Sequence record: PV029745.1
Length of the DNA stretch: 64,000 bases
Direction: 5' to 3' (one strand)
In this document: positions 1 through 63,746 of the stretch, one piece after another
How the letters are laid out: each line of letters opens with the position of its first letter
Position numbering within the stretch: position 1 is the stretch's first letter
Program-made: the position numbers and the translations under genes
The notes under the pieces: generated by a model
Database searches by the model: none
The model's input: only the letters and a program-made list of their open reading frames with translations
What the model was told of the DNA's origin: nothing

Positions 1-787
1 GGATAAGGAAGTTACCAACCCAATACCGAAGCTGCTGGATGAATCCCCACTTCTCGCCACCCATTCCGAGTTCGTAGTTCCGCGAACAAACGCCAGTACG
101 AATGCCTTTGTCATCGACACAGAATACGGTCATGGAGCTACCATCCAGCTTATAGGTAACTTCCATGTCATCACCGTCTTCTTTCAGGTTATAAAACGCA
201 ACGGTCTTATTCTGAATGCGGTCTTGATCGGACTTAGTTAGCATCTCAGGCCACGGTTTCAGAGCGCCACCCAGATTACCAATCAGCTTGGCACCAAGCT
301 TAACGATCCACGGAGCGTTACGTGCTGCATGAGCCTTCGATACCATCGGAGGAGCAGACTCGTACTTAAGGATACCCAGCTTCAGGGTCAGGTTAGTATC
401 AACGGGTTCATCTTTGAACTCATCGGGAATCGGAACCAGTAGTCCTTGAGAGAGCTCTTTACGAAGCTTGATAGTTTTCAAACGATGATAGTTTTTACCG
501 TCTACACGCCGATTGTCGGACCGACGGCTCTCAAGAAAACCGAAGAGCTTAACGTTATCCAGAGGAAGAAGAGAATCAATCTCGCAGTAAATAGCGCGAT
601 CACCTTTCTTATATTCGCCCATCTTTACACAAAGTTGCCAACCACCAACAATAGCCAATTCCAGAGCATCGGCATTAGGGTGTTTCACAACATCATCGAT
701 CTCAACAATGCGTGCAAGCTTACGAGTTTCTTCTACTACACCAAAACCTTCGCGGATCGGTTTCAATTCATCCATTTCAATCGTCAT
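1..787 (-). CDS. ATP-dependent RNA ligase, DRB0094/Rnl5 family (3' end runs off the window; absent from the ORF track)
   Basis: Manual translation from ATG at 787: MTIEMDELK...RKLARIVEIDDVVKHPNADALELAIVGGWQLCVKMGEYKKGDRAIYCEIDSLLP (N-terminal OB-like module typical of the family), KSDQDRIQN, motif I EVTYKLDGSS, VCSRNYEL; open to position 1. Confidence 0.82.
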   Translation of the reverse strand, partial: MTIEMDELKPIREGFGVVEETRKLARIVEIDDVVKHPNADALELAIVGGWQLCVKMGEYKKGDRAIYCEIDSLLPLDNVKLFGFLESRRSDNRRVDGKNYHRLKTIKLRKELSQGLLVPIPDEFKDEPVDTNLTLKLGILKYESAPPMVSKAHAARNAPWIVKLGAKLIGNLGGALKPWPEMLTKSDQDRIQNKTVAFYNLKEDGDDMEVTYKLDGSSMTVFCVDDKGIRTGVCSRNYELGMGGEKWGFIQQLRYWVGNFLI

Positions 788-788
788 T

Positions 789-995
789 TTATTTACCTTT
801 ATCAGTGATGGTTGTGCGAACGTCATTACGGAACCGCCGCACTATTTCGAGTATTTCTTTTTGATCTACATAACGAATGTCTGTCAGTTCAATTTCACGA
901 CAAGCCAATGAAATTTCAGCTTCAATCTGATCTGACAACGTTCGACGTAAACCATCTATCGTTACTTTACCCGGTGGCGGCGGCGCTGCGATCAT
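789..995 (-). CDS. hypothetical protein
   Basis: 68-aa ORF; ATGA overlap with the upstream gene and abuts the ligase start. Confidence 0.55.
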   Translation of the reverse strand: MIAAPPPPGKVTIDGLRRTLSDQIEAEISLACREIELTDIRYVDQKEILEIVRRFRNDVRTTITDKGK

Positions 996-1390
996 GTATT
1001 CACACCCCAGTTATAATCATAGAAGGTTTCAACGAAAGACTTACCAGGTAGTTCTTGTACGACCTGCTCTGTGCTATTTACCAAGGTTACAGCTTGCTCA
1101 AATGGGACAGGATGCCCACTTACCGGCGAGATGATCTTGTAACCATTCTCGCGTAGGTGATCAACGAAGTTCACCATACCAGTTTCAAGACCGACATTAT
1201 AAATATCGTTCTCCTGGTTGGTAGTGATTTCATAAGTCTTTCCAGCAGGGATATCGACAATGGGAGTACGGTCGTCACTGGTACGTGCTACGTCGCCCAT
1301 GGTACGACTTACAGTCCAGCAGAACTCATTGAGAACTGGGTTCGATTCTTGCCATTCTTTCTTTTCATCTAAACGGTCTTTATTCGACAT
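992..1390 (-). CDS. hypothetical protein (start revised to MSNKDRL)
   Basis: GAGG RBS before ATG at 1390; the longer track start overlaps a terminator and promoter motif. Confidence 0.6.
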   Translation of the reverse strand: MSNKDRLDEKKEWQESNPVLNEFCWTVSRTMGDVARTSDDRTPIVDIPAGKTYEITTNQENDIYNVGLETGMVNFVDHLRENGYKIISPVSGHPVPFEQAVTLVNSTEQVVQELPGKSFVETFYDYNWGVNT

Positions 1391-1419
1391 TGCAGTTACC
1401 TCGTTGTGGATACAAAAGA

Positions 1420-1445
1420 GTAATATAGATTTGAAATCTTTTTTA
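1420..1445 (-). promoter_or_regulatory. phiKZ-type early (virion RNAP) promoter motif
   Basis: Minus strand AAAAAAGATTTCAAATCTATATTAC; contains TATATTAC, the published phiKZ early promoter core. Confidence 0.6.
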
Positions 1446-1454
1446 TGACATAAA

Positions 1455-1472
1455 GGGGAGCCGAAGCTCCCC
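1455..1472 (-). terminator. intrinsic terminator with UUCG loop
   Basis: GGGGAGC-TTCG-GCTCCCC-TTTA on the minus strand, right after the Nampt-like stop. Confidence 0.75.
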
Positions 1473-1479
1473 ATGTCTA

Positions 1480-3246
1480 TTACAGAGAGGTCGCAATCCG
1501 TTCCCGGATTTTTGCCATCGTGTCATTCTTGTAGAATTCACCATTCTTAAAGAATAGCTTCAATTCACCGGATTCTGTTTCCAGAGTCGCCCAAGACATG
1601 TCGGCTTCTTGTTCAAGAACGAAGTTACCTTCTTCATCTTTAATTACACGAAGGAAACCTTTTGCAGACTTCTTACTAGATGCAGCTTTTGGATCTTTAT
1701 ACAGCTCTACGAATTCCTCTTCGATCTGAACAGCAGTGGCTTTAACGGCCATACCGAACGTATCGCGAGTGTTGTACTGATAGGTGTAGCTACCAATACC
1801 GAGAACGACGTTACTAGAGGCGTAGCCTTTACGTTCCAAGCGAGACATGATCTGCTCGGTACGATCTACAGTAATCGAATCACCATAGATCAGGCCAACA
1901 TATTCGTTCAGGCATTTGAAGCCTTTACCGTTAACAGTACCGCCAAAGGAATCCCACAGGACTTCAATCGCACCACGTACTTCAACTTCCGGGATAGTCT
2001 TTTCAGACAGGAAATCGGAGAGCGACGAAGCAATGTGATTGATCTCGTAGTATTCGCCTGCGATACGTACAACTTCGTAGCCACTGAACTCAATGGACCC
2101 CAGTTCACCGATGTGCTTCTCGAAATCAGCGCGATCTGCAAACTCAGTCGGGTAAGCCATGTAGCCAGTAATAACTTTAACCGGATCACCGGAGTCAGGA
2201 CGAACAACAACCCTGGCAAGGCCAAGTTCATTCTTCAGACGACTTTCGATTTCTGCACGGATGCTCGGGAGAACATCAGAGATAACACCCCAGAAGTCGA
2301 AGGAATCACAGACCAGCGAGATGATGCCTTCCGGAACTTTCTGAAGAATGATCTCCAGAATGTAGTCACGTTCAGCTTCCAGTCGCAGTTTGTCATGCAG
2401 TTCCGGAGTGATCACAGTACCTTCCTCTTTGAGGAAGTTGATCTTCATTTGCAAACGGTACAGGATGTTGGTAGTGGCTACAGCATGTTCGGTTGCAGTA
2501 ACCGAAGCACCCAACAGTTCAGTATCGCTATTAGCACCGTAATACATCTCAGCGTAATCAAGTGCCGGGATGGTATCAGTACCAGCGAAGCTAGTCAGGT
2601 GAGCCGAGCCAGAACGCATTGCATCTTCAGGGCCACTCATACCACGGAAGCTGAAATCATGTGCTTGGAACTTAACGTGCTCACGGTTATCGCAAGTACG
2701 GTCAGCATAATGGTTCAATACACGTTGGTATTCAGCAGCGATGGTTGCGTTGCAAATCATTTTCCAGTTGTACGAACTAACGATGGTTTCCAGATAGTTC
2801 ACCAGCCAGTAATGATCATCGTCATCCAGACTGTTGTAAACTACGAAAGTTGGAACACCAATGTTAACACGTTCACCTTCATCAATAGCCAGTACAGTCA
2901 GAGGCAGGTAACCCAGTTCATGTAGTTTGTACAGACACTCGTGTTTGATAACGCCTTTACCGCACATGTTGTCGAAACGACGTGCAGCGCGTTTAACAGC
3001 GATTTCACGAGGCAGATTGAAGAAGGTGCGATCCCACAGTTCTACCAGTTCGTGCCAAGTACCTTGCAACCCGAAGTTAACGACTTTGTTATCGTAGAAC
3101 GCAGAGCAAGACTTCGACCGCAGGAACTGCTTAGCAGAGCGCGGGGTGAAGTTAGCATATTTACGTTCAGTACCTTTCGGGTACAGAGCACCATGACCGG
3201 GTTTGTAGCAGTCAGTAGCAGTTGCAGCATAGAGAGCATTAGACAT
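1480..3246 (-). CDS. nicotinamide phosphoribosyltransferase-family protein (probable NARP1 Namat)
   Basis: TDCYKPGH, HDFSFRG, GTDTIPA, ATEHAV, SLVCDSFDFW, VVRPDSGDP, GLIYGDSIT, LGIGSY, RDTFGMAVKAT, KKSAKG; GAGGA RBS before ATG 3246. Confidence 0.9.
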   Translation of the reverse strand: MSNALYAATATDCYKPGHGALYPKGTERKYANFTPRSAKQFLRSKSCSAFYDNKVVNFGLQGTWHELVELWDRTFFNLPREIAVKRAARRFDNMCGKGVIKHECLYKLHELGYLPLTVLAIDEGERVNIGVPTFVVYNSLDDDDHYWLVNYLETIVSSYNWKMICNATIAAEYQRVLNHYADRTCDNREHVKFQAHDFSFRGMSGPEDAMRSGSAHLTSFAGTDTIPALDYAEMYYGANSDTELLGASVTATEHAVATTNILYRLQMKINFLKEEGTVITPELHDKLRLEAERDYILEIILQKVPEGIISLVCDSFDFWGVISDVLPSIRAEIESRLKNELGLARVVVRPDSGDPVKVITGYMAYPTEFADRADFEKHIGELGSIEFSGYEVVRIAGEYYEINHIASSLSDFLSEKTIPEVEVRGAIEVLWDSFGGTVNGKGFKCLNEYVGLIYGDSITVDRTEQIMSRLERKGYASSNVVLGIGSYTYQYNTRDTFGMAVKATAVQIEEEFVELYKDPKAASSKKSAKGFLRVIKDEEGNFVLEQEADMSWATLETESGELKLFFKNGEFYKNDTMAKIRERIATSL

Positions 3247-3262
3247 ATTTTTGATCCTCGGA

Positions 3263-4150
3263 TTAGAAAACAGAATGGGAGAAGAATTTCGGGTCACGTA
3301 CACCATCATGCCGATAATCATTTACGGCGTTAGGATGATAGGTGTTAGTGGTCTGGATATAGTCGTAGTATTCGTTCAGCTCGTCGAAACCCTTGGAGAA
3401 AATACCATGGGTTACAAACAGACCCAGTTGATCTACGATGCACTGTTCGTGGATAACCTTAGCAAGTTCAATGAACGTGCGGCCACCATCACAGATGTCA
3501 TCGATAACCAACAGCTTTGCTAACCGAGGAACATCATGGGCATTCAACAAAGACGTATGGGTGATCTTACCAGTCGACAGTTCACGGTTCTTGCAAGCGT
3601 AGAGTACGCCAGCAGCGCCAATCTCTTTTGCAATGGCTTCGATCTTTTTACGTGCACCTTCATCAGGTGCAACCAACCACCATTCTTGTGGAGTTTCCAG
3701 AAGTTGTCCTTCTACACATACCCAGCTCTTGATAATATCTGCTTGGGTAATCTCGCGGCAATTGTTGATGAGTGGCAGCGACACATTACTGTGCGGATCG
3801 TACAGGCATACAGACGTAGCGTCCAATGCATTGATCAAACCAGTCATCACACTAATCGACAGAGGTTCACCTTCATCGCAAACACGATCTTGTCGTGCGT
3901 ACGGCAGATAACCAATAACCAAGTGTATTTCAGGACGAATACGCTGGCGACGAATAGCGTCGAATACCAGGAACAGTTCCATGATATCGTCACTATTACG
4001 AAGCCAAGCATTGATTATGAATCGTTCGCCTTTCTTTCTGAGATCTTTCAGAGGGATCTTGATACCGATCTCACCGCCAGGGAATTTAAAGGGTTGACAA
4101 TCGTAGTGATCTGCCAAGCCGTTACCGTGAAGCTGAGTAATTCGAATCAT
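3263..4150 (-). CDS. ribose-phosphate pyrophosphokinase-family protein (probable NARP1 Adps)
   Basis: FPGGE, YLPYARQDRVCDEGEP, DPHS, VAPDEGA, K.R, IDDICDGGRTF, LFVTHGIFS; directly upstream of the Nampt-like gene. Confidence 0.88.
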   Translation of the reverse strand: MIRITQLHGNGLADHYDCQPFKFPGGEIGIKIPLKDLRKKGERFIINAWLRNSDDIMELFLVFDAIRRQRIRPEIHLVIGYLPYARQDRVCDEGEPLSISVMTGLINALDATSVCLYDPHSNVSLPLINNCREITQADIIKSWVCVEGQLLETPQEWWLVAPDEGARKKIEAIAKEIGAAGVLYACKNRELSTGKITHTSLLNAHDVPRLAKLLVIDDICDGGRTFIELAKVIHEQCIVDQLGLFVTHGIFSKGFDELNEYYDYIQTTNTYHPNAVNDYRHDGVRDPKFFSHSVF

Positions 4151-4198
4151 TTATTTTTCCTTTAGGGAAGAAGTTGGGGACCGAAGTCCCCGTTCGGG

Positions 4199-5452
4199 TT
4201 AGCCCTTGACGCAAACAATCTGACGCAGGGTGTGGACGATCTCAATGAGGTCATCCTGAGCAGCCATTACGTCTTCAATGTTCTTATAAGCCTTTGGAGT
4301 CTCGTCGATCACGTCAATGTCTTTCCGGCATTCTACACCGGCAGTATCACGAGCATGATCAGCAAGAGTAAAGGTCTTAGCGGCTTGGGTTCGGGACATG
4401 ACACGTCCTGCTCCGTGCGAACACGAACAGAAGGACTCGCGGTTCCCTTTACCTTTCACGATGAAGCTCTTCGCGCCCATCGATCCAGGAATAACGCCCA
4501 GCATACCCTCATCTGCACGCACTGCGCCTTTACGAGTTACGGATACTTTCGCACCGAAGTGGTTCTCGAAGGAGACGTAGTTATGGTGACATTGCACAGC
4601 TGATAAGCTGGTATTGATTGGTCGACCCATGTAATCTGCAACTGCCTCGATAGTGGCGCGCATCATGATCGTACGGTTGAGCGTGGCATAACGCTGAGCC
4701 CAATGTACAGCTTCGATGTAGTCGCTGTAGTACTTGGTACCTTCCGGTAGATAAGCGAGGTCCTGATCAGGCAGGTTGATGTGGTAGAGCCGCATCTCCT
4801 CTTTTGCTTTCTCAATGAAGTACCGACCGATTGCGTTACCGATCCCACGCGAACCCGAATGGAGCATGATCCAAACTCGATCTTGTTCATCCAGACAGAT
4901 CTCTACGAAGTGGTTACCAGTGCCGAGGGTACCAGCATGGTTGAATGCACGGTTAGCAGCCTTACCCAGTTTCGGGTGTTTAGCCACGATGAGCTTCAGT
5001 TCCTCTTCAAGCTTCTTAACCTGAGCTTGGAGCTCCGGTTCGAGTTTCTTGTAAACGAGGTTGAAGTCACTCCATGCACCACGGTCATTCGGGCCACCAT
5101 TGTCAGTACGACCATGGGGGATACGGGATTCGATTTTATAACGAAGATGTTGCAGACCATGAGTCATGTCGTTAGCTGTCAGATCAGTAAGCTGGCATGC
5201 AATCCCGCACCCAATATCGACCCCTACCGCAGACGGAATGATTGCACCCCGCGTAGCGATTACGGAACCGATGGTTGCACCGGTACCAAGGTGGACATCA
5301 GGCATTACAGCCAAATGCTTGTAAATGAACGGGAGTCCCGCGATGTTCTTCAGCTGACGTTTTGCATCAGCTTCAACAGGGACGCCTTTAACCCAAGCTT
5401 TAATTGGGAATTCATTCTGTTCGTTCAGCATAACGTATTTTTGAGTAGTCAT
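4199..5452 (-). CDS. rtcB: RtcB RNA ligase (2',3'-cyclic phosphate/5'-OH)
   Basis: MPDVHLG, VGVDIGCG, GTLGTGNHFVEI, HSGSRG, HHNY, RKGA, IPGSMG, SCSHGAGR, IDETPKAYKNI. Confidence 0.95.
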   Translation of the reverse strand: MTTQKYVMLNEQNEFPIKAWVKGVPVEADAKRQLKNIAGLPFIYKHLAVMPDVHLGTGATIGSVIATRGAIIPSAVGVDIGCGIACQLTDLTANDMTHGLQHLRYKIESRIPHGRTDNGGPNDRGAWSDFNLVYKKLEPELQAQVKKLEEELKLIVAKHPKLGKAANRAFNHAGTLGTGNHFVEICLDEQDRVWIMLHSGSRGIGNAIGRYFIEKAKEEMRLYHINLPDQDLAYLPEGTKYYSDYIEAVHWAQRYATLNRTIMMRATIEAVADYMGRPINTSLSAVQCHHNYVSFENHFGAKVSVTRKGAVRADEGMLGVIPGSMGAKSFIVKGKGNRESFCSCSHGAGRVMSRTQAAKTFTLADHARDTAGVECRKDIDVIDETPKAYKNIEDVMAAQDDLIEIVHTLRQIVCVKG

Positions 5453-5591
5453 TGTAGACGCTCCGAGAGTTTTAAGGTTTAGGAATTCAACGATTTAACG
5501 TTGTGCCAAGGTCGGGATCGCAGAATTCCAAGGATAGGTAGAGTAATGTCATGCCTATCCGTATTAGATAAGACTTTTGAGTAAATTGTCA

Positions 5592-6173
5592 TCAGTCCGA
5601 TTCAACGGCCATGGATAACTCTTTATGTTTCCTTCGTCTTTCAATATCAGCAAACCATGGTCTTACACTTAACCATATTGCAGGCCAACTGAGAATAGCC
5701 GCTACAGCCATCCACACTGCACTGAGTAGCACCCATGCGTCGTTACCATCGTCAACATCTCGTGGAGCTATGTCGAGTTGATAGTCAGTTCCAACGGGGA
5801 CATGGTGATAAGTGTAATCACCTAGCTTAGTTTCGTATACGAAGGGGACACCTTTCATCTTCCCTTCCCAACGACCCATTAGCTCTGTGTAGATCCCATG
5901 TTTGTATTTGTGGGTCTCTTCCCATTTCCAGGTCAATACAACCTGGGTCTTACGTTTGGTTACGTAGTCAGAGAAGAATGAGTTGTAGACTGCACCACCC
6001 ATAAATGCTAAGCAGATTAGGTAGAGCACCACACAACGCAGTTTAACCCACTTGGAGATTGGTACATACGGCTCTTGTTTCATAGTCATCGTACAGCCGA
6101 TTGCGTTTGCATAACCCAAGGGATTCCTTGATGCCATTGCATTTATTGCGGCTGCCTCCAGAGTTATACTCAT
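5592..6173 (-). CDS. hypothetical membrane protein
   Basis: 193-aa ORF with two hydrophobic segments; coupled to the upstream stop. Confidence 0.65.
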   Translation of the reverse strand: MSITLEAAAINAMASRNPLGYANAIGCTMTMKQEPYVPISKWVKLRCVVLYLICLAFMGGAVYNSFFSDYVTKRKTQVVLTWKWEETHKYKHGIYTELMGRWEGKMKGVPFVYETKLGDYTYHHVPVGTDYQLDIAPRDVDDGNDAWVLLSAVWMAVAAILSWPAIWLSVRPWFADIERRRKHKELSMAVESD

Positions 6174-6997
6174 TTAGGATTCTCATGGATAAGCTGGAAC
6201 GTGTCGAACTTGTATTGATCAACGAAGTGCCACGCGAGTTCACTCAGCTTAAAGATATCCGGACGTTCGTATTTACCGAAGTCGGGTTTCTCTTTAGCCA
6301 AATGGAAATCGATGAAACGGTCCAATACAGGGCAACGATCGATCAAGTCTTGTTCAGTGGAACCTATCTTACAGTTGACCAGTTCCTGAATACGTTTGTA
6401 CAAGGTGGGATCAGACAGAATCGGTAGGAGTTCATGGAATACCATCGGTGGATGTTCACGACTAGTCTCAACCCACAATGCTGCTAACAGTGGACGGAGA
6501 GCATAGAAGTATTTCTTCATGCGGACTTTCTCATCCGACAGCCAACGCATCTTGGTTTGCTTGGCCATGGAGATATAGTGCATGAAGCTCGATTCGGGAA
6601 TGAAGTGCTTGATAGCGTAATCACGAATCAGTTTGTAATCCCATTCGTTCTTACGGTAAACGATCGGGGAGTTCAACCACTCCAACAGAGTCGGGTTAGA
6701 CTTGTAAGCCAGTTGAAGTGTCTTGGTTATACTCCAACCAGCCAGATCGAGTTCCTTGGAAACCATCTCTTCGATGGTGTCACGACCTTCGTTATCAACC
6801 CGGACATAATGACTCGGATGGTTAACGTAGATGAAGCGAACATCGTAGTCACTATTAGTAGAAGCGAAACCCCAACCACGACTACCGGACTCACAGGCGT
6901 AAATGATCTTTACACCATACTTCTGTTCGATACGAGTTAACTCGGCGTCTATAACTGCATGCATCTCATCACTAACAGGGTGACGTGGATCCATCAT
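6170..6997 (-). CDS. Pol-beta-superfamily nucleotidyltransferase (RlaP/YcgL-like)
   Basis: YACESGSRGWGFASTNSDYDVRFIY (GS...DxD), LDLAGW, KSNPTLLEWLNSPIVY, KKYFYALRPLLA. Confidence 0.85.
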   Translation of the reverse strand: MMDPRHPVSDEMHAVIDAELTRIEQKYGVKIIYACESGSRGWGFASTNSDYDVRFIYVNHPSHYVRVDNEGRDTIEEMVSKELDLAGWSITKTLQLAYKSNPTLLEWLNSPIVYRKNEWDYKLIRDYAIKHFIPESSFMHYISMAKQTKMRWLSDEKVRMKKYFYALRPLLAALWVETSREHPPMVFHELLPILSDPTLYKRIQELVNCKIGSTEQDLIDRCPVLDRFIDFHLAKEKPDFGKYERPDIFKLSELAWHFVDQYKFDTFQLIHENPK

Positions 6998-7492
6998 TCA
7001 CCTACCTTTTCAAGTTTGAGTTTCTCTTCTTTACCCGTGTCCAAATACATGAACATCGAATTTCCCAGTAGGTTGTAATACATCCAACCTTCCTTAACCA
7101 CTTGATCGCCATACGTCAGAGGAATGTTCAATTCGTAAATGGCGTCATAAGGGATGATTACAGGATCTTTGTCAGGCTTGTTGAGGACGAGTGCATCGTC
7201 AGTAAGCTCAAGCCATTGCTTACGACTGATGACCCCAAGACCGATACTGAATTCGCTACCTGGGTCTTTCCCATTGAAGATACCACAGCGAACAGCAGGA
7301 TCAACTCGATCACCAGCAATACCGATTTTAACCGATACTGAATTCGCTACCTGGGTCTTTCCCATTGAAGATACCACAGCGAACAGCAGGATCAACTCGA
7401 TCACCAGCAATACCGATTTTAAGAGGGTCAGGGTCTACGCCCATCAATTCAACAACCAGTTCCAGTTGACGCTTGAGTTCAATCTTGTTCAC
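6994..7492 (-). pseudogene. 135-aa hypothetical gene frameshifted by a 91-bp tandem duplication
   Basis: GTG start 7492 with GAAGGA RBS overlaps the upstream TGA; removing one repeat copy gives 408 nt (136 codons) joining track ORFs 7328..7540 and 6994..7410. Confidence 0.75.
7240..7421. repeat. perfect 91-bp tandem direct duplication
   Basis: 7240-7330 is identical to 7331-7421 (accgatactgaattc...caataccgatttta). Confidence 0.95.
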
Positions 7493-8109
7493 AGTGTAAA
7501 TTCCTTCGTGTTGTATTGACGTGCAGAGTCGGTCCACCATGTAGGTGTCTGTGCGTAGTAGTATTCACCAAAGATACAAGTGGCTAAGGTTTTATCCAAA
7601 GCTTCCTGATAAGACATCTCGCCATCTTTAGTAGCGAAGTGAACCATGTTGTTGAAGCAGGTAATGATGTCAGCGTTTTCTTTTGTGGAGAAAACAACGG
7701 TACCTTTGGCTCCCACTTCGGAATGGATCATCGAGCTCCACGGACGAACACCACGATCAGTGACCAGATAGATATCTTGTACAGCCGATATGGAGAAGAA
7801 CGTACGAAGAAGGTTACCGTAATCGGGTAGGTCTTGCTCGAACAGAATATCGAGGATCTTACAGACCTTATCGATCTTCTTCATTTTCTCGGTGTAACGC
7901 GCACCACCATCATTCTCAGTGCAACCGATATTGAAGATGATACTGTAAATGGATTCCACAAGCTTACAGCATTTGTAGACGTACGGAGTTCCCTTTACTT
8001 TAGGAGTCCATACGAAAAGATTGCTCTTTCCTGGATTAGGTTGCTTGAACTGATGGATGCGGTACGGAATACCTTTTTCAAACAGCATGAAGTCCATTAT
8101 TTTCTCCAA
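7489..8109 (-). CDS. hypothetical protein (paralog of 20198..20758)
   Basis: 206-aa ORF; shares IY[LI][VL]TDRG and F..ENA.I motifs. Confidence 0.65.
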   Translation of the reverse strand: MEKIMDFMLFEKGIPYRIHQFKQPNPGKSNLFVWTPKVKGTPYVYKCCKLVESIYSIIFNIGCTENDGGARYTEKMKKIDKVCKILDILFEQDLPDYGNLLRTFFSISAVQDIYLVTDRGVRPWSSMIHSEVGAKGTVVFSTKENADIITCFNNMVHFATKDGEMSYQEALDKTLATCIFGEYYYAQTPTWWTDSARQYNTKEFTL

Positions 8110-8118
8110 AGGAAATAA

Positions 8119-8138
8119 AGCCTCCCCGAAGGGAGGCT
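8119..8138 (-). terminator. intrinsic terminator AGCCTCCCCGAAGGGAGGCT
   Basis: Identical 20-mer at 43691-43710 and 46799-46818, reverse-complemented at 37388-37407; variants near 13821, 27001, 63237. Confidence 0.8.
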
Positions 8139-8144
8139 TTTATG

Positions 8145-9575
8145 TCAGACAGCTACTTTCCCAGCGATGTGTGGATGGAACTGGTAATCCAGAATCTCGT
8201 AATCTTCCCGAGTGATATCAAGGAAAGGTTTACCTTTGGCCTCAGGCTTGAAGCGGATGGTAGGAGTAGGATAAGTATTGCGGGAACGTTGCAGAGTAAC
8301 CTGTTCCTCATGGTTACTGTAGATGTGACAGTCACCACCAGTCCAGATGAACTCTTCTGCTACCATGTTAAACTGGTTCGCCAACTGATGAGTCATCAGC
8401 GAATAGAACATGATGTTAAAGGGCACGCCCAAAAATTCGTCCGCCGATCTTTGATAGAGTTGACAACTGATAGCTCGTTTCGGAGCACCATGTTGATCCA
8501 ACCATTCTACCACTGCTTCATCGGTAGCCTTTTCATAACCACGACAGATACGCAGAAGTGCTTTAACCTGCTCAGCACCACCGAATGGAGGTTGACCACG
8601 AGTAGTCTCACCACTAATCTGATCATGGTAAGCATCAGCTTCGAAATGCGTTTGGTCTAGAGCTTGCACTCGTTCATCTACGGTAAGTTCACGGGTCCAG
8701 AACTGAATAAATGCATGGCATGGCGGGAGTGCCTGATCTTCGACCAAACGTGGATCCCAGGCACAGATAATCAGTCGACGACTATCTGGATTGTTTTCCA
8801 GTTGGTAAAGCAGTTCTTGAACCTGATCCACACGCCGGCGAATAACACACTCATCTTTCGTGTAATCAACACCAGGTACGTCAACTACGAACTTAAAGCC
8901 GCGTTTCTCGTAATTAGCCCAGTCTACTTTAGGAACGATACGAACATCGTCGATATCACGCCAGGTTTTACCATAGACCGGACCAAGATCACCACCAACC
9001 AAACGGAAGGCAGCCAACAGACCATCGTTGTCTTTAATCACGATCTTCGCATCGCCAATGACAATACGATATACGCGTAGAGCCATGCCATAGTAGTCGA
9101 ATGCATCGGGACCAGGACCGAAACGACTTACATCAGCCCAGGCTTTCAGGTTGATCAACAGTAGTGCCGATTTGTCCTGTTCAGGATCAATCCACTTCCA
9201 ATCGACATCACCGATCTCATTGCTGAAATGCATCTCAAACGGAATGTTCTTGAACTTCTTCTGAACAGCTGTAGTCAGCCAATCATCAGAAACCTTTTCG
9301 AATACTTCAGTACCCGGCTTAACCCACTCGTTCCAGATGGTGACGTTCTTGCTCAGGAGATACTCAAGGCGAGTGTCACCAGACTTCATCCAGTTGAGTT
9401 CTTCTTCAACCGACGGAAGATGAATCTTCTTGGTGGTCACTACAGGGAGGTTACCGTTACGAAGATCATAGCGGAACTGTCTACCGAACAAAGAGGTAGT
9501 ACCCGTACCAGTACGGTCACCTTTAAATACACCGTACTTCTGGGTATCTTCAAGTAGTTGTAGATACTGATGCAT
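8145..9575 (-). CDS. thyA: thymidylate synthase with large insertions
   Basis: DRTGTGTTSLFG, VTTKKIH, IWNEW, GDLGPVYG, SRRLIICAW, ALPPCH, CQLYQRSADEFLGVPFN, GDCHIYSNH. Confidence 0.95.
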   Translation of the reverse strand: MHQYLQLLEDTQKYGVFKGDRTGTGTTSLFGRQFRYDLRNGNLPVVTTKKIHLPSVEEELNWMKSGDTRLEYLLSKNVTIWNEWVKPGTEVFEKVSDDWLTTAVQKKFKNIPFEMHFSNEIGDVDWKWIDPEQDKSALLLINLKAWADVSRFGPGPDAFDYYGMALRVYRIVIGDAKIVIKDNDGLLAAFRLVGGDLGPVYGKTWRDIDDVRIVPKVDWANYEKRGFKFVVDVPGVDYTKDECVIRRRVDQVQELLYQLENNPDSRRLIICAWDPRLVEDQALPPCHAFIQFWTRELTVDERVQALDQTHFEADAYHDQISGETTRGQPPFGGAEQVKALLRICRGYEKATDEAVVEWLDQHGAPKRAISCQLYQRSADEFLGVPFNIMFYSLMTHQLANQFNMVAEEFIWTGGDCHIYSNHEEQVTLQRSRNTYPTPTIRFKPEAKGKPFLDITREDYEILDYQFHPHIAGKVAV

Positions 9576-18162: not shown

Positions 18163-20758
<2,596 letters not shown>

Positions 20759-21317: not shown

Positions 21318-21406
21318 GCTTGTATTCTCCTATTGGTGGTTTGTAGTTCACATTTGTAATATAGCCTTTAAAAAGGCTTAAATGTAAACCAAACCACCTT
21401 AATAAA

Positions 21407-24341: not shown

Positions 24342-24426
24342 TTTAATGCCTCGGGATTAAGATCGATGGGTTCATTGCTATTTCCAAAAAGAAATAAAAA
24401 AGGGGAGCCGAAGCTCCCCATTTCAG

Positions 24427-28645: not shown

Positions 28646-28670
28646 GTAATATAGATGTAAGATAATTTTT
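28646..28670 (-). promoter_or_regulatory. early promoter motif
   Basis: Minus strand AAAAATTATCTTACATCTATATTAC. Confidence 0.6.
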
Positions 28671-30760: not shown

Positions 30761-33700
30761 ATGTTAGACTCATTCCGTTCGATATTTGGCGGCTTGACAG
30801 TCAAAGAAACTGAAACGGAGATTATCATCTCTGGTATTCGTGGATTCGACATAGTCCGAGATATCAGTAAGCATTGGAAGACCTCCAAGATTACAACCAA
30901 CCTGTTTAACAACATTGGCCGGAACTCATTAAGCTTTTATAAGTTCTTTGCTCCTGAAGTAATGTACATGTTGGAAAACATTGTCTATTACCGTTCTCGA
31001 TATACCTCTGTAAAAATGATCGCTGCTATTAAAGATGCGCTTTTACAGAATACTTGGCTTGCCTCTACTAAAGCCATTGATGAGAAATCAGTACAAGGGC
31101 GACTTAATCTAGCTAATCTGGCACGATTAAAATTTGATCCAAAACCGTATCAATTGGAATATTTCAAGAACTATACCTATCGGCTAGATCAATACAATCT
31201 AAATGGTGACTTAATTGCCGCAGCCGCCGGTACGGGTAAGGCACAACCACTAAACACCATGGTTAAAATTCCTGGTGGCTGGAAACGTATGGGTGATATT
31301 CAAGTTGGTGACATGGTCACTGCTTGGGACGGTACCCCGACTAAGGTCACCGGCGTTTACCCACAAGGGAAGAAACAAACTTTTACGGTTACCTTCAAAG
31401 ACGGTCGCACGACCGAAGCATGTGATGAGCACCTATGGCGAGTCTATTGCTATAATTGGACGAGGGATGGTAGCGATGGTTGGCGAGTAATCAACACCGC
31501 CACCCTGTTCGGTTACATGTCTATGAAGTCATACCGGAATCGACTTTACGTGCAACTCTGTAAGTCCGAAGAAGGTATGGATGTCGATCTACCGATCGAT
31601 CCGTATAACCTCGGGGTTATTCTCGGCGATGGTGGGATCAGTTCGAGTTGTGTGACCATTACCAGTGGTGACCCTCAACTATTCGACACGTTCAGTAAAG
31701 CTCTCCCGGATAACCTCAACCTTGTCGCCCGTGACGCCATTACCATGGGGGTCATCAACAAGAAAGGTGAACGTAACCCATATACCAGTGCTCTTCGAGA
31801 TATGAATTTGCTAGGAACGAATTCCCTTTCTAAATTCATTCCGCAAGAATACCTGTTCAGTTCTACTGCCCAGCGATTGGCTCTTGTACAAGGTCTTATG
31901 GACACAGATGGTACAGTTGACGAGAATAGCAACCTCAGTTTCACCAGTTGCAGCTACATGTTAGCCAAGCAGTTCCAGTACCTAGTTCGTTCCCTGGGTG
32001 GCATTGCCAAACTGGCGTTCAAAGAGCCTACATTCACGTATAACGGCGTCAAGAAGTACGGTAACATGTCTTATCGGGTAGCTGTCCGGTTTGATACCCC
32101 CAGTGCACTTTTCCGCCTTGATCGCAAAATAGCTCGATGCAACGACAATAACCAATACGCGGATAATCTTCGTTTACAGGTGAAACATGTTAACCTGTCG
32201 GATCGAGTGGAGTGTCAATGTATTCAGGTTGAACATCCCGATCACCTTTACGTGACCGATGATTTCGTCGTGACACATAACACATATCTTACTTCAGCTA
32301 TTGCCGAGATGCTTGATGCTGAACTCATTGTTGTAATGTGTCCTAAGAATGCTCTGGATCTAGTCTGGTTAGATTCCCTGAAAGAGATGTTCCATAAGCC
32401 GCAAACAGTTTGGCATACGTTCGAACCTAATATGCCCTACAAAGGACAGCGTTGGATCGTCTGTCATTACGATGCAATGGATAAGGTAGTAGAACTTCTT
32501 AGAAACCGTAATATAGTTGGTAGCAAACGTACTGTGACGATCCTTGATGAATCGCACAACATGAATGACCCTAACTCTACACGGACTAAACTTTATCAAC
32601 TCATTGTAAAGATGGTCGGTTCTCGTAATAATCTTTTAGCTTCGGGCACGCCTGTAAAAGCATTGGGTGTTGAACTGATTAACTTACTGCGAATAGTAGA
32701 TCCTCTATTCACTCCTCAGGTAGAAGAACGCTTCAAGAAGATGTATGGTAAAGAAGCATCTAAAGGACTCGATATAATCAGACATCGATTAGGTCTTGTA
32801 TCCTACAAGGTAGAGAAACAAGAACTCGACCTAGAGCCCCCGATCATGCGTCCTTATCCAATTAAAATTCCGAATGGTGATGACTTCACCCTTCCGGCTA
32901 TTAGAAAGGTTATGGAAGCATTTATTCAAGAACGCTGGGCTTACTACAAAAAGCGGAGACCTGAAGATGATAAACGCTGGGCAGAGTTCTGTGGACTCCA
33001 TCGAAAAACCCTCAAAACAGCCGCACAGGAAAGAGCCTTCAAAGAGTACTTGGATCTGGTCAAGTATGTTCAACAGATCCCTGATCCACGCTTTGCAGGA
33101 GAGGAAATTAAAGCAACGAACCAATACGAGAAATTAGTATTTGGACCTTCCCTTCCAAAGCAATTCATCCATGAGTTCAGAGACATCAAATCGGTTATTA
33201 AATATACTAACCTTAAGATTCAAGGTGAATGTCTTGGACGTGTGTTAGGTGGTAAACGTATTGAGTGCCACGTGGCAATGGTCCCGTATGTCGACTGGGT
33301 TGGTATTACAGAATCTACTCACAAGAAGACGATTATGTTTACTAGCTTTGTTGAAGCAGTGGAAGCAGCAGATGCACATTGTGTTAAGCTAGGTATGAAA
33401 CCACTAGCCGTTTATGGGAAGACTACTAATGAACTGGCTGAAATCGTTAAACGCTTTGATTCGGGTAAGGATCTAAATCCACTCAATGCTACATATGCTT
33501 CTCTATCGACGGCTGTTCGCCTGACAATGGCAGATACCTTGATTCTATTGAATAGTCCATTCAGAGCTTATATTCTGGAACAGGCTATATCTCGTGCTTA
33601 TCGTTTAGGTCAAGATTCTCAAGTTGTCGTTTACCAGTGTTCTCTCGATACTGGAGATATCCCAAATATCTCTACCCGATCGGCTGATATTCTTAAATGG

Positions 33701-59870: not shown

Positions 59871-61577
59871 ATGTTTAATCCCGAAACTCTGGACGCTGTT
59901 CGCGATGCAGCTCAAGCATTCACTGAACAGGAACGTGTTCTGACAATTCCGAACCCCGAGTTCCCTCTAGCTGTATATGCTGACGGTTTCAACTGTGAAA
60001 CCGAAGGTAATAAAGTTGCAATGTCCGATGAACTGGCTGCTTCCGTTGAAGCTCATTTCGTCGAAAGTAACGTTGAAGCACCCGAGAACGTTAATGAAGA
60101 ACGTGAAGCGATCATCAGCAATATGCATACTGCTATTGCCAAGATTCAATTCAATACTCAAAACGTTATCATTCCGGCTATTAAAGCAATGGCCACTGAC
60201 TATGCCTCCCGTCAGAACGTAAGTTCTCAAGCGGATTGCGATGTCAGCACTTTCAACTACGACCCGATTCATAACGATCCTCGTCTAGTTAACCACATCC
60301 AAACTCGCTATGCTAAAGTGCGTCCTCTACCGGAATATCGTACCTTTATGCTTCGCCCGGTTGATGCTGCTACCATCATCGAGATGGTATCCATCAATAA
60401 CCCACACCTGGATCAAGAGCAAGTTACTGAATGGGCTCTTAAGATTCCGGCACAACGGGTAGAAAACGTTTGGAGTGAACTATTTGGTACTGCACGTGGT
60501 TTGACTGTTTCTAACCTGAGCTTTATCAATCCTAATGCTTTCCCGTTTAATCTTGATGAACTGACTCTAGCTTATTTCATCTGTGGTCATTACATCGAGA
60601 ACCCACAAGAAGTACCTGGTGAATCCGTAACATCGGAAGAATGGGAACAAACGGTTCGTCTACTCCACGAGATGCTTGGTTTCTACATCATCCGTGCGTA
60701 TGAGAATCGTCTTGAAATGCGAGAGTCTAATACTCTTGTACTTCGTTATGAAGCTCATCGCCCAGTTGAAAACCGTCGTGTACTTGTTACTCTTAACGGT
60801 GACGTTGCTGAGAGCTGGCTCGTTAAAGGTGGTTCTGTTGAAGCTCTGCTTGGTGCAGCTATTGATGGCGGTAATGTCGTACATGCACAGGGCATTGACG
60901 CACGTGCTGATCATTACATCAAACGCTGGACCGCTACATATCCGCTAATCAAACAAGCAGCACTCGACTACGCTGAGAGCCGTCGTCGGCAGGACGTTAT
61001 TGATACCTTCCTCGCCCACTGTGGTGAAGGTCCTTTACGTGAAATGAATATCGGTAACGTACGTGAACTACTGGCTACCGCCATGCGTTTCGTTCGGCGC
61101 GAAGATCTGGATAATCCATACTGCGTATTCAGTAATCTTATCTGCCGTACTTACTACACCGAACCGATGTATAAGCTGTATCTCGATACTATCGATGAAT
61201 ATGGCCAAAACTTCCCCGGTGCAGAACTACGTGAATTGAATACTCAAGCTCTGATTTCGCTGATTGCTATTTTCCAAGCACAGCAGATCAAAGTAGAAAC
61301 ATTCAATCCTGATGTTGATCCGAATGCAACTCTTCCTGAACCAGAAGAAGTGCCAGAGGAAATAACTGAACCAACTAGTGAAGAAGTTGCCGATGCTGTC
61401 GGTGATGCAGTAGAAGGTGAAGGTCCCCTGGCTGAAACTCCGGAAGTAGAAGACGAAGAAGATCCTTACGCTGATGAAACTCCTACTGAATCTGAGACTG
61501 AAGAAGTCGAAGAAGAGCAGGAAGAAGCCAGTGAAGAAGAAACTGAGTCCGAAACTGAAGAAGAAGAACAAGCATAA
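59871..61577 (+). CDS. head protein with long acidic C-terminal tail
   Basis: 568 aa; AGGAG RBS; Glu-rich tail; synteny with the phiKZ head block. Confidence 0.6.
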   Translation: MFNPETLDAVRDAAQAFTEQERVLTIPNPEFPLAVYADGFNCETEGNKVAMSDELAASVEAHFVESNVEAPENVNEEREAIISNMHTAIAKIQFNTQNVIIPAIKAMATDYASRQNVSSQADCDVSTFNYDPIHNDPRLVNHIQTRYAKVRPLPEYRTFMLRPVDAATIIEMVSINNPHLDQEQVTEWALKIPAQRVENVWSELFGTARGLTVSNLSFINPNAFPFNLDELTLAYFICGHYIENPQEVPGESVTSEEWEQTVRLLHEMLGFYIIRAYENRLEMRESNTLVLRYEAHRPVENRRVLVTLNGDVAESWLVKGGSVEALLGAAIDGGNVVHAQGIDARADHYIKRWTATYPLIKQAALDYAESRRRQDVIDTFLAHCGEGPLREMNIGNVRELLATAMRFVRREDLDNPYCVFSNLICRTYYTEPMYKLYLDTIDEYGQNFPGAELRELNTQALISLIAIFQAQQIKVETFNPDVDPNATLPEPEEVPEEITEPTSEEVADAVGDAVEGEGPLAETPEVEDEEDPYADETPTESETEEVEEEQEEASEEETESETEEEEQA

Positions 61578-61646
61578 TTGATAACCTCCGGTATCCTTCG
61601 GGGTACCGGAGTGTGTCAACTTTCCTTTTTCTAAGAAGAGACTTAT

Positions 61647-62369
61647 ATGAACGTTAGGCAATTAACACGTGATGCTGCACGCGTAAATGCAAATCTGATT
61701 GAATTGGAAGATGGTGGTATTGCTACAAACCTTCCCTGTAAGATTCAAATTCCAGAACGTTTTGCTGCTAAGAACTTGGCTGTATTAGGTAGTGAAGTAT
61801 TCATATTTGGATTCTTTCCTATCATCATGAATGAAGAGTTTTACGCGGTTAATAATACAATCGCGATGATGCGCATTCTTCCAAACTCTACTGAGCGTGT
61901 TGTTGTAGAGAGTGAACCTTATTACGAATTTAGTTTCGAGAAAGGTGATAAAGTTTTCTATTCGACACATCTTGTGGTCAACGACACACTAACATATTAC
62001 ATGTACGACGAGTTCGTATCCAAAGGGAACATCCCTTGGTATATGAACTATTATGACATGGCGAAAATGTTCGAAACTGCAAAAGAACATGCAGATACAT
62101 TTATTGGTGGTCGTTCGATTATCGAGCTTATCATTTCAACCATCGCTCGTGATCCGGATGATATGACAAGACTATACCGCCACATTCTGTCGCGGCATGA
62201 TGATGTTAAAAATAAACCTCCAGTAACCGTACCTTTCCGATCGGTTATTTGGAACACCTCAGATACCACCTCAAAACTTAATGGTGCTTACTTCAGCGAC
62301 GCTATCAACTCTGCACTAGTGAACCCTAGTGAGAAAGTAGAAGTGATTGAAGAGCTATTGAGGACATAA
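61647..62369 (+). CDS. conserved phiKZ-like virion protein
   Basis: 240 aa between the head protein and protease; synteny. Confidence 0.6.
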   Translation: MNVRQLTRDAARVNANLIELEDGGIATNLPCKIQIPERFAAKNLAVLGSEVFIFGFFPIIMNEEFYAVNNTIAMMRILPNSTERVVVESEPYYEFSFEKGDKVFYSTHLVVNDTLTYYMYDEFVSKGNIPWYMNYYDMAKMFETAKEHADTFIGGRSIIELIISTIARDPDDMTRLYRHILSRHDDVKNKPPVTVPFRSVIWNTSDTTSKLNGAYFSDAINSALVNPSEKVEVIEELLRT

Positions 62370-62384
62370 CACGGAGTTGCAGAA

Positions 62385-63218
62385 ATGCATCCTTTGGCAC
62401 AATCTTCTTTTGGTGTCCAAAATTCTCCGCAGAATCAGGTACGTATTGGCTGCACTATGTTAGCTGGTACGGACAAAAAAGGAATTCTTGCGCCGAATGC
62501 GGACGGTTATTATACTGTAGTTCTGGGTGCCTATGGTACACATAACTCTGCTGGTATGTTCTATGACGAAGCCAGTGGCGTTGCGATGTTTGATCCGAAC
62601 TCTTCCCTGATGCGTCGCCTTAAGAAAGGTGTTCTCTTCATGGAGTTCAAACACCCTGAACCGTTTACAGACCTGATGATTGATGGTCGTGTTGTTCGTC
62701 AACCGATGGATGATCGTCAATACCTGCAACGTATTCGTATGATCGACGATAACCGGGTTTGTGCACATATCCGTGCATTGACTATTGTTCCCGGTAAGAA
62801 TGAAAATGGTAAGACTGTTAAAATGGTCGTCGGTGAGGTTAAACCTTACGGTCCGTTTGGTCACATTTTTAAAGAGTCTTTGGATAACCCAAGTATCAAT
62901 ACCTATTGTTCCGTTCGTTCTATCACACAGGACGACGTAATGCGTGGTATTAAGTATACACGGGAAATCTCCACCTGGGACTTCGTCGGTGAGGGTGGTA
63001 TCTATATTGCTAACAAATATACCTCCCCTGCTTTGGAAAGTTTCTCTGATACCGAAGTTATCATCACACCTGCTACCCTTTGGAAGATGCAGGATGAAGC
63101 ACAGAAGCGTGCTAATATCGGTATGGAATCTGATCCTAATCTAGACGTTACTGATCTAATTCAACAACTAGGTTGGTCGCGTAAGAAGCCGATTCGTGTA
63201 CCTGCTTACATGCGATAA
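62385..63218 (+). CDS. prohead protease (phiKZ gp175-like)
   Basis: YYTVVLGAYG..N, EFKHP, RVCAHIR, VKPYGP, CSVRSIT, TWDFV.E.GI; C-terminal ALE/GME putative autocleavage sites. Confidence 0.8.
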   Translation: MHPLAQSSFGVQNSPQNQVRIGCTMLAGTDKKGILAPNADGYYTVVLGAYGTHNSAGMFYDEASGVAMFDPNSSLMRRLKKGVLFMEFKHPEPFTDLMIDGRVVRQPMDDRQYLQRIRMIDDNRVCAHIRALTIVPGKNENGKTVKMVVGEVKPYGPFGHIFKESLDNPSINTYCSVRSITQDDVMRGIKYTREISTWDFVGEGGIYIANKYTSPALESFSDTEVIITPATLWKMQDEAQKRANIGMESDPNLDVTDLIQQLGWSRKKPIRVPAYMR

Positions 63219-63579: not shown

Positions 63580-63746
63580 AGGTTTCTATCCCATGTGAAG
63601 AAAGTCTGAGTTTAACCGAATCAGACGTATCGCAAACTGGGTGAGATGTTCGAGCATCTCCCCCAATTCACGTTTGTAATATAGTTCTCAATTAAGTTAG
63701 ATTAAGACGGCATATTGCCCTCCCTTTTGGGGAGGGCTTTATGTCG

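Follow-up and report, generated by a model that had tools for sequence, protein, structure and literature searches.

Several phage systems that restore nicotinamide adenine dinucleotide (NAD+) have been described, and they differ in the enzymes they use. NARP1, an NAD+ reconstitution system, pairs an ADP-ribose pyrophosphokinase (Adps) with a nicotinamide ADP-ribose transferase (Namat) and has characterized representatives in SPbetaL1, the Felixounavirus phage Bas63 and ICP1. NARP2, of the KVP40 type, combines a nicotinamide phosphoribosyltransferase (Nampt) with a Nudix-containing nicotinamide mononucleotide (NMN) adenylyltransferase (NMNAT), NARP3 consists of a PnuC-like transporter and a bifunctional NadR-like enzyme, and NARP1-AP is marked by a Macro-domain ADP-ribose-1''-phosphate phosphatase (Adpp). 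In the study that discovered NARP1, 97% of the genes in the Adps clade adjoined a Namat gene and no phage carried both NARP1 and NARP2 (Osterman et al. 2024). Deletion of the Bas63 operon renders that phage sensitive to the defence system SIR2-HerA. Here we analyse a pair of genes, adps and namat (positions 1480–4150, minus strand), in a 64,000-nucleotide stretch of sequence record PV029745.1 (hereafter, the window), which an identity match places at positions 62001–126000 of Pseudomonas phage phiHQ, a 300,578-bp jumbo phage of Pseudomonas aeruginosa assigned by its record to the Chimalliviridae. Clade membership of both proteins, diagnostic motifs, adjacency and the absence of an NMNAT point to a NARP1 module of a nucleus-forming Pseudomonas jumbo phage, a reading to which we assign a probability of about 0.88.

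A sequence-only reading of the window had described adjacent, co-oriented genes for a phosphoribosyl pyrophosphate (PRPP) synthetase-like and a Nampt-like protein at this position and had proposed that they constitute NARP1. The arrangement and its coordinates proved exact, with both open reading frames (ORFs) on the minus strand and the two genes 16 nt apart. The upstream frame (3263–4150, 295 aa) matches Pfam Pribosyltran_N (E = 8e-11) and PHROG 619, 'ribose-phosphate pyrophosphokinase' (E = 6e-80), whereas the downstream frame (1480–3321) matches NAPRTase (E = 1e-33), NAMPT_N and PHROG 448, 'nicotinamide phosphoribosyl transferase' (E = 5e-175). Most likely namat begins with the ATG at 3246 and encodes a protein of 588 aa (1480–3246), rather than beginning with the open frame at 3321, because the GenBank start and the beginnings of homologues lie there and a GAGGA (3255–3259, within the spacer at 3247–3262 that separates the two genes) is found 9 nt upstream. 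The whole phiHQ genome contains one gene of each kind, and the record annotates them as PRPP synthetase (Prs) and Nampt, the former as 'ribose-phosphate pyrophosphokinase, possible alternative form'. These labels would suit a different explanation, namely conventional salvage, in which a true PRPP synthetase and a true Nampt would produce NMN and a host adenylyltransferase would complete the synthesis, as in NARP2 minus its last enzyme.

The first protein does not behave as a canonical Prs. Against the NCBIfam Prs model TIGR01251 it scores 104 bits, under the cut-off of 113 and comparable to the reference Adps proteins of ICP1 (98 bits) and SPbetaL1 (106 bits), whereas E. coli Prs scores 423. 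A maximum-likelihood tree combined 18 database homologues and 10 bacterial Adps-like proteins with two reference groups, 11 canonical Prs and five Adps. In it, a branch with 100/100 support and a length of 3.99 separated all canonical Prs from the phiHQ protein and the five reference Adps, so that the phylogenetic check proposed in the earlier reading places the protein on the Adps side. Both its score and its position in the tree argue against conventional salvage. Pairwise comparisons gave the same picture, with phmmer scores of 129.7 bits to ICP1 Adps versus 46.9 to E. coli Prs and BLASTP identities of 40% to Felixounavirus Adps versus 26% to E. coli Prs. Matches in the Protein Data Bank were Prs structures only, in a searched set that held no Adps structure.

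At the residue level, R86, H120, D163, K187, D217 and D218 of phiHQ Adps correspond to the acceptor and catalytic residues R87, H121, D161, K185, D212 and D213 of ICP1 Adps. All six are kept, and mutation of H121, D161, K185, D212 or D213 impaired the ICP1 enzyme in published work. Since Prs has these residues too, their conservation indicates an intact enzyme but not its specificity. The structural study of ICP1 Adps identified a remodelled PP loop (C215–S220 in ICP1) as the ATP donor site and as conserved among Adps. The donor loop of phiHQ, DDICDGGRTF, is identical to that of Felixounavirus and Psa21 Adps. The ICP1 loop is DDICDGAASF, and its I214, C215, D216 and F221 are also kept in phiHQ; the corresponding loop is DDLSSFGGTF in SPbetaL1 Adps and DDMIDTGGTL in E. 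coli Prs.

For the second protein, overall similarity was rejected as a means of distinguishing Namat from Nampt, as Haemophilus ducreyi NadV, a bacterial Nampt, scored 321 bits and SPbetaL1 Namat 348. The NCBIfam model NF006629 was likewise rejected, as it accepts both kinds: the phiHQ protein scores 443 bits (cut-off 405), which on its face favours conventional salvage, but the model rates SPbetaL1 Namat higher still (594 bits) and so does not discriminate. Because similarity alone does not separate the two enzymes, the motif of the clamp helix, part of the selectivity clamp defined for Namat in the structural study of that enzyme, carries particular weight. In phiHQ this motif is GSYTYQYNTRD (residues 485–495), with aromatic residues at motif positions 3 and 7 (Y487 and Y491), compared with GSFTYQYNTRD in SPbetaL1. 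These adenine-stacking aromatics are absent from the Nampts of phages Miller (GGGLLQEVTRD) and X1 (GGGLLQKVNRD), from that of Xanthomonas (Xcc) and from H. ducreyi NadV (GAQTYQRNTRD), in which Gln and Arg replace them. The presence of both in phiHQ argues against a true Nampt. The Nampt-like catalytic core is kept as well, with F198, D224, H254, R349 and D351 matching F189, D215, H245, R306 and D308 of SPbetaL1 Namat.

The second protein also grouped with Namats in a tree built from a quick search, with four phage Nampts as the outgroup and one partial reference sequence (ICP1 Namat, which is N-terminally truncated in the isolate used). The four phage Nampts, three of them with an adjacent NMNAT gene, split off with 100% support in the SH-like approximate likelihood ratio test (SH-aLRT), leaving the phiHQ protein among the Adps-linked Namats, as the earlier reading would predict. 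Within these, it belonged to a clade of long-form proteins, and this clade was sister (94%) to the Bas63-type Namat of Felixounavirus. The roughly 100 extra residues of the long form lie in two insertions (about residues 261–300 and 362–420), common to the Bas63-type proteins, which an AlphaFold2 model with a mean predicted local distance difference test score of 95.2 renders as a helical hairpin and a small alpha/beta subdomain, respectively. The closest solved structures by both sequence and fold are those of SPbetaL1 Namat (9W5W and 9W5X).

When genome contigs were searched for cellular Nampts to serve as outgroups, every one of the best 80 loci proved to be Namat-like, and NMNAT-adjacent phage Nampts were used instead. 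Among these best 80 bacterial proteins by similarity to SPbetaL1 Namat (from Paenibacillaceae and many Bacteroidota), 65 had an Adps-like gene no more than 5 kb away, and the aromatic clamp motif was present in all 80; thus, on sequence grounds, NARP1-like pairs appear to be common in bacterial chromosomes, whether or not these loci are prophages. Some Namat homologues are about 890–900 aa or 640–690 aa long, and their longest continuous alignment covers only about 60% of the query; these may carry inteins or fused domains.

Searches of the complete 300,578-bp genome found no other route to NAD+. We searched for an NMNAT using tblastn, phmmer and small hidden Markov models, each built on three to four sequences. 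The queries were NadD and NadR of E. coli, three phage NadR-like proteins (T5-like, ICP1 and KVP40-like) and three phage NadM-Nudix proteins from NARP2 phages. No credible match emerged: the best hit (E = 0.009, 12.5 bits) fell in an unannotated 82-aa antisense ORF and all others had E > 0.2, while the last coding sequence of the genome, which lay outside these scans, encodes a virion structural protein. The earlier claim that the window lacks an NMNAT therefore stands and extends to the genome as a whole, where an NMNAT encoded elsewhere had been named as the observation that would overturn the proposal. NARP3 gave no match genome-wide with E. coli, T5-like, ICP1 and KVP40-like queries, including PnuC fragments. 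A phmmer search with the Adpp of Vibrio phage Athena returned nothing better than E = 3.8 across the genome, and no Macro or RyR domain was found in the ORFs neighbouring the pair. At this search sensitivity, NARP2, NARP3 and NARP1-AP are excluded by sequence.

Comparison with the characterized systems places phiHQ nearest to the Felixounavirus NARP1, for which VpaE1 served as our representative. The two share the same genes in the same order and a long-form Namat with both insertions (593 aa in VpaE1, 37% identical to the 588-aa phiHQ protein), and their Adps proteins are 40% identical over the core. VpaE1 differs in having an HNH endonuclease gene between the pair and a longer insertion 2, and the Felixounavirus systems come from another host and another phage family. 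SPbetaL1 Namat matches the phiHQ protein closely in sequence (E = 1e-102) and fold (Foldseek E = 2e-52; TM-score to 9W5X of 0.94 by target), but it is a short form of 491 aa without the two insertions. NARP2 (Nampts of phages X1, fHe-Yen9-04, phiKp_21 and Miller) shares a homologous Nampt-fold enzyme and the goal of NAD+ restoration. It requires an NMNAT, however. Three of the four phages encode one next to their Nampt (none appeared in the part of the Miller genome that was inspected), whereas phiHQ encodes none. The NARP2 Nampts also branch as a clade of their own and have no aromatic residues at the clamp positions. ICP1 Adps, for which structures with ADPR/ATP and with ADPR-PP/AMP are available, belongs to the same fold family but is only 31% identical to the phiHQ protein, and ICP1, unlike phiHQ, also carries a NadR-like gene. 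In the ICP1 isolate examined, this gene is followed by an unannotated gene; the NadR-like gene may represent a NARP3-like second route.

Several observations count against a NARP1 assignment. In ICP1 Adps, F18 and F92 contact adenine and F223 belongs to the lid; the corresponding phiHQ residues are D14, C91 and E228, and A218 and A219 are replaced by Gly and Arg. The ICP1 residues F18, F92 and F223 are likewise not kept in SPbetaL1 or Felix-type Adps and so are not family-wide features. In Namat, the clamp loop (SCL), which would supply a third stacking residue, reads S-A-K-Q-F in phiHQ. Lys39 at the third position is allowed (Arg, Lys or Tyr occur there) and is thus a candidate for this contact; SPbetaL1 uses Arg40, in a loop nine residues shorter. 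The fourth position is Gln where the Bas63-type proteins, including VpaE1, have Trp. H. ducreyi NadV (9KE8 and 9KEO), whose bit score lies so near that of SPbetaL1 Namat and which also matches in fold (Foldseek E = 7e-47), was crystallized with NMN, and its close relationship to the second protein speaks for conventional salvage. Namat enzymes also keep about half of the PRPP-to-NMN activity of human Nampt in vitro, so that part of the flux might conceivably pass through NMN and an NMNAT of the host. A search for RNA sequencing of phiHQ found no such run; apart from DNA runs it returned a single metagenomic RNA run, which contained 5% of the words. Even so, the anti-defence activity of Bas63 is independent of host pncC or nadR, and the second protein stands apart from the NMNAT-linked Nampts. 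On balance, we consider conventional salvage very improbable.

Both genes appear to be maintained by selection. Compared with the related phage PA1C, the ratio of nonsynonymous to synonymous substitution rates (dN/dS) was 0.070 for namat and 0.077 for adps, indicating strong purifying selection, and phage PS119XW was 97.2% identical to the window over the pair region. Three distant jumbo-phage contigs, with Namats 52–65% identical to that of phiHQ, likewise have a Prs-like gene 13–30 nt upstream of a long Namat. These results bear on the idea that the genes are decaying or inactive remnants carried along in a large genome, for which we found nothing specific beyond a 12% base difference between phiHQ and PA1C in namat. 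The selection analysis already contradicts it, and the intact frames, the retention of the catalytic residues tested, the high-confidence structural model and the occurrence of the pair in distant jumbo phages leave it a negligible probability.

The divergence from PA1C is unevenly distributed. A mosaic boundary lies inside adps, such that identity is about 100% from RtcB to mid-adps and 71–97% through the remainder of adps and namat (about 3850 down to 1480), and the synonymous divergence (dS) is 0.018 for RtcB, 0.128 for adps and 0.585 for namat. Of the 38 amino-acid differences between the two Namats, 16 fall in residues 367–417, within insertion 2.

The system itself is known. In the parts of the supplement of the discovery study available to us, PA1C (MK599315_00291/292), PS119XW (MN103543_00276/277), Psa21 and Phabio are listed as having Adps and an 'Adps-associated' Namat (Osterman et al. 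2024), and the N-terminal parts of the PS119XW sequences given there closely match the phiHQ proteins. The names phiKZ, phiPA3, 201phi2-1, Goslar and EL do not occur in these parts, which is uninformative because the tables are cut short. A freshwater nucleus-forming Pseudomonas phage has also been reported with a predicted NARP1. Because orthologues in these sister phages were already listed as NARP1, the phiHQ pair is an instance of an established system in a newly deposited genome.

The mechanism we propose follows by homology from the characterized enzymes of SPbetaL1, Bas63 and ICP1. First, NAD+ would be cleaved into ADP-ribose and nicotinamide by an NADase that serves the host as a defence (SIR2, TIR or similar). 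Adps would then move the beta-gamma pyrophosphate from ATP onto ADP-ribose, at its 1'' hydroxyl, to form ADP-ribose pyrophosphate (ADPR-PP), and Namat would let nicotinamide displace the pyrophosphate of ADPR-PP, yielding NAD+ directly, with neither NMN nor an NMNAT involved. The rebuilt NAD+ pool would serve the phage, including its NAD+-dependent ligase. The present analysis establishes the gene structure, the families and clades of the proteins, their diagnostic motifs, the absence of the other pathways and the purifying selection, whereas the activities of the two enzymes, their role against defences, and when and where they are expressed are inferred.

The ligase had been singled out in the sequence-only reading as a phage enzyme, LigA, that needs the rebuilt NAD+. 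The gene at 18163–20205 (minus strand) does encode an NAD+-dependent ligase, with adenylation, OB, HhH and BRCT domains, although its match to the N-terminal NAD+-binding domain Ia is weak (24.9 bits versus a cut-off of 27). By established enzymology, the by-products of such ligases are NMN and AMP rather than ADP-ribose; thus LigA is no source of NARP1 substrate, NARP1 cannot recycle its by-products, and the ligase only raises the dependence of the phage on the NAD+ pool that NARP1 would protect.

This bears on a further explanation, in which the chemistry is that of NARP1 but its purpose is mainly metabolic, supplying additional NAD+ to phage consumers such as LigA whether or not a host defence is present (an 'NAD-jumbo phage'). 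A ligase gene only 14 kb away is in keeping with this idea, as are neighbouring genes of nucleotide metabolism and RNA repair rather than known anti-defence genes. Yet the input of NARP1 is free ADP-ribose, whereas LigA yields NMN and AMP and the genome has no NMNAT to use the NMN, and free ADP-ribose and nicotinamide are the products of NADase defences. Many jumbo phages do have NAD+ synthesis genes together with NAD+-consuming enzymes (PMC11662467), but overall we regard a mainly metabolic role as improbable.

Turning to the organization of the locus, adps and namat are probably co-transcribed, and the transcription unit likely ends at a terminator-like hairpin (GGGGAGC-UUCG-GCUCCCC, followed by UUUAUG) at 1455–1472 on the minus strand, 8 nt past the namat stop. 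This hairpin folds at -19.7 kcal/mol (z = -5.1; 0 of 200 shuffled sequences fold as well) and has an identical 18-nt copy 23 kb away at 24402–24419, also on the minus strand. The spacer upstream of adps (4151–4198, minus strand) contains an AGGAAA ribosome-binding site (4156–4161) and, just after the RtcB stop, a hairpin (GGGGAC-UUCG-GUCCCC, 4176–4191) that folds no better than shuffles (-12.5 kcal/mol, z = -1.4) and whose role is uncertain. All three are GC-rich UUCG-tetraloop hairpins on the minus strand at gene ends, and such hairpins are probably terminators or RNA-stability elements of phiHQ.

Other regulatory elements were less evident. An Rfam scan of window positions 1–9000 for an NAD+ riboswitch or other element found nothing credible, and a sigma-70 promoter scan returned fewer sites than shuffled sequences did, an expected outcome when the phage has RNA polymerases of its own. 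The word TATATTAC occurs five times, always on the coding (minus) strand (1420–1427, 21356–21363, 28646–28653, 32508–32515 and 63676–63683), the first copy lying between the namat hairpin, which it closely follows, and the next gene. We take it to resemble the early-promoter word of phiKZ, but rejected it as a phiKZ-type early promoter as its count was not significant (6 of 100 shuffles reach five).

The pair is embedded among RNA-repair genes, all on the minus strand: a PHA02142-type RNA ligase (1–787, cut by the start of the window and spanning 61432–62787 in the record), RtcB (4199–5452) and RlaP, a nucleotidyltransferase of the pol-beta family (6170–6997). In the three distant jumbo-phage contigs, RtcB is likewise found upstream of the pair, with a thymidylate synthase and the same RNA ligase downstream, and this neighbourhood may represent a conserved counter-defence or repair island. 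The thymidylate synthase of phiHQ (8145–9575, minus strand; 476 aa) has about 140 extra residues within the N-terminal half of its Pfam match; its relatives are 457–481 aa long, and one with an intein has 782 aa. The neighbouring frames at 992–1390 and 5592–6173 had no Pfam or PHROG match and no usable Atlas lead.

A candidate target of this module is the SIR2 NADase Avs5, with which P. aeruginosa attacks jumbo phages that form a nucleus. The study of Avs5 recorded a rebound of NAD+ and a fall in ADP-ribose after 15 minutes of infection with phage Pa36 and left open whether a phage enzyme was the cause. NARP1 would plausibly counter Avs5. A stronger version, that in PA1C-like phages NARP1 is the specific answer to an early-acting Avs5, set in a counter-defence island with RlaP, RtcB and the PHA02142-type RNA ligase, and that the hypervariable insertion 2 of Namat might be shaped by a Namat-targeting host factor, strikes us as speculative and rather unlikely.

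The conceptual gain from one more catalogued NARP1, in a record that still names its genes Prs and Nampt, is small. The module nevertheless is a concrete candidate for the agent that returns ADP-ribose to NAD+, so far without explanation, when jumbo phages infect Avs5 cells, bearing in mind that the rebound was measured with Pa36, a different phage. It also predicts resistance to NAD+-depleting defences, including Thoeris, SIR2-HerA, DSR, short Argonautes and possibly Avs5, a prediction of practical use, given the current interest in deploying PA1C-like jumbo phages against P. aeruginosa.

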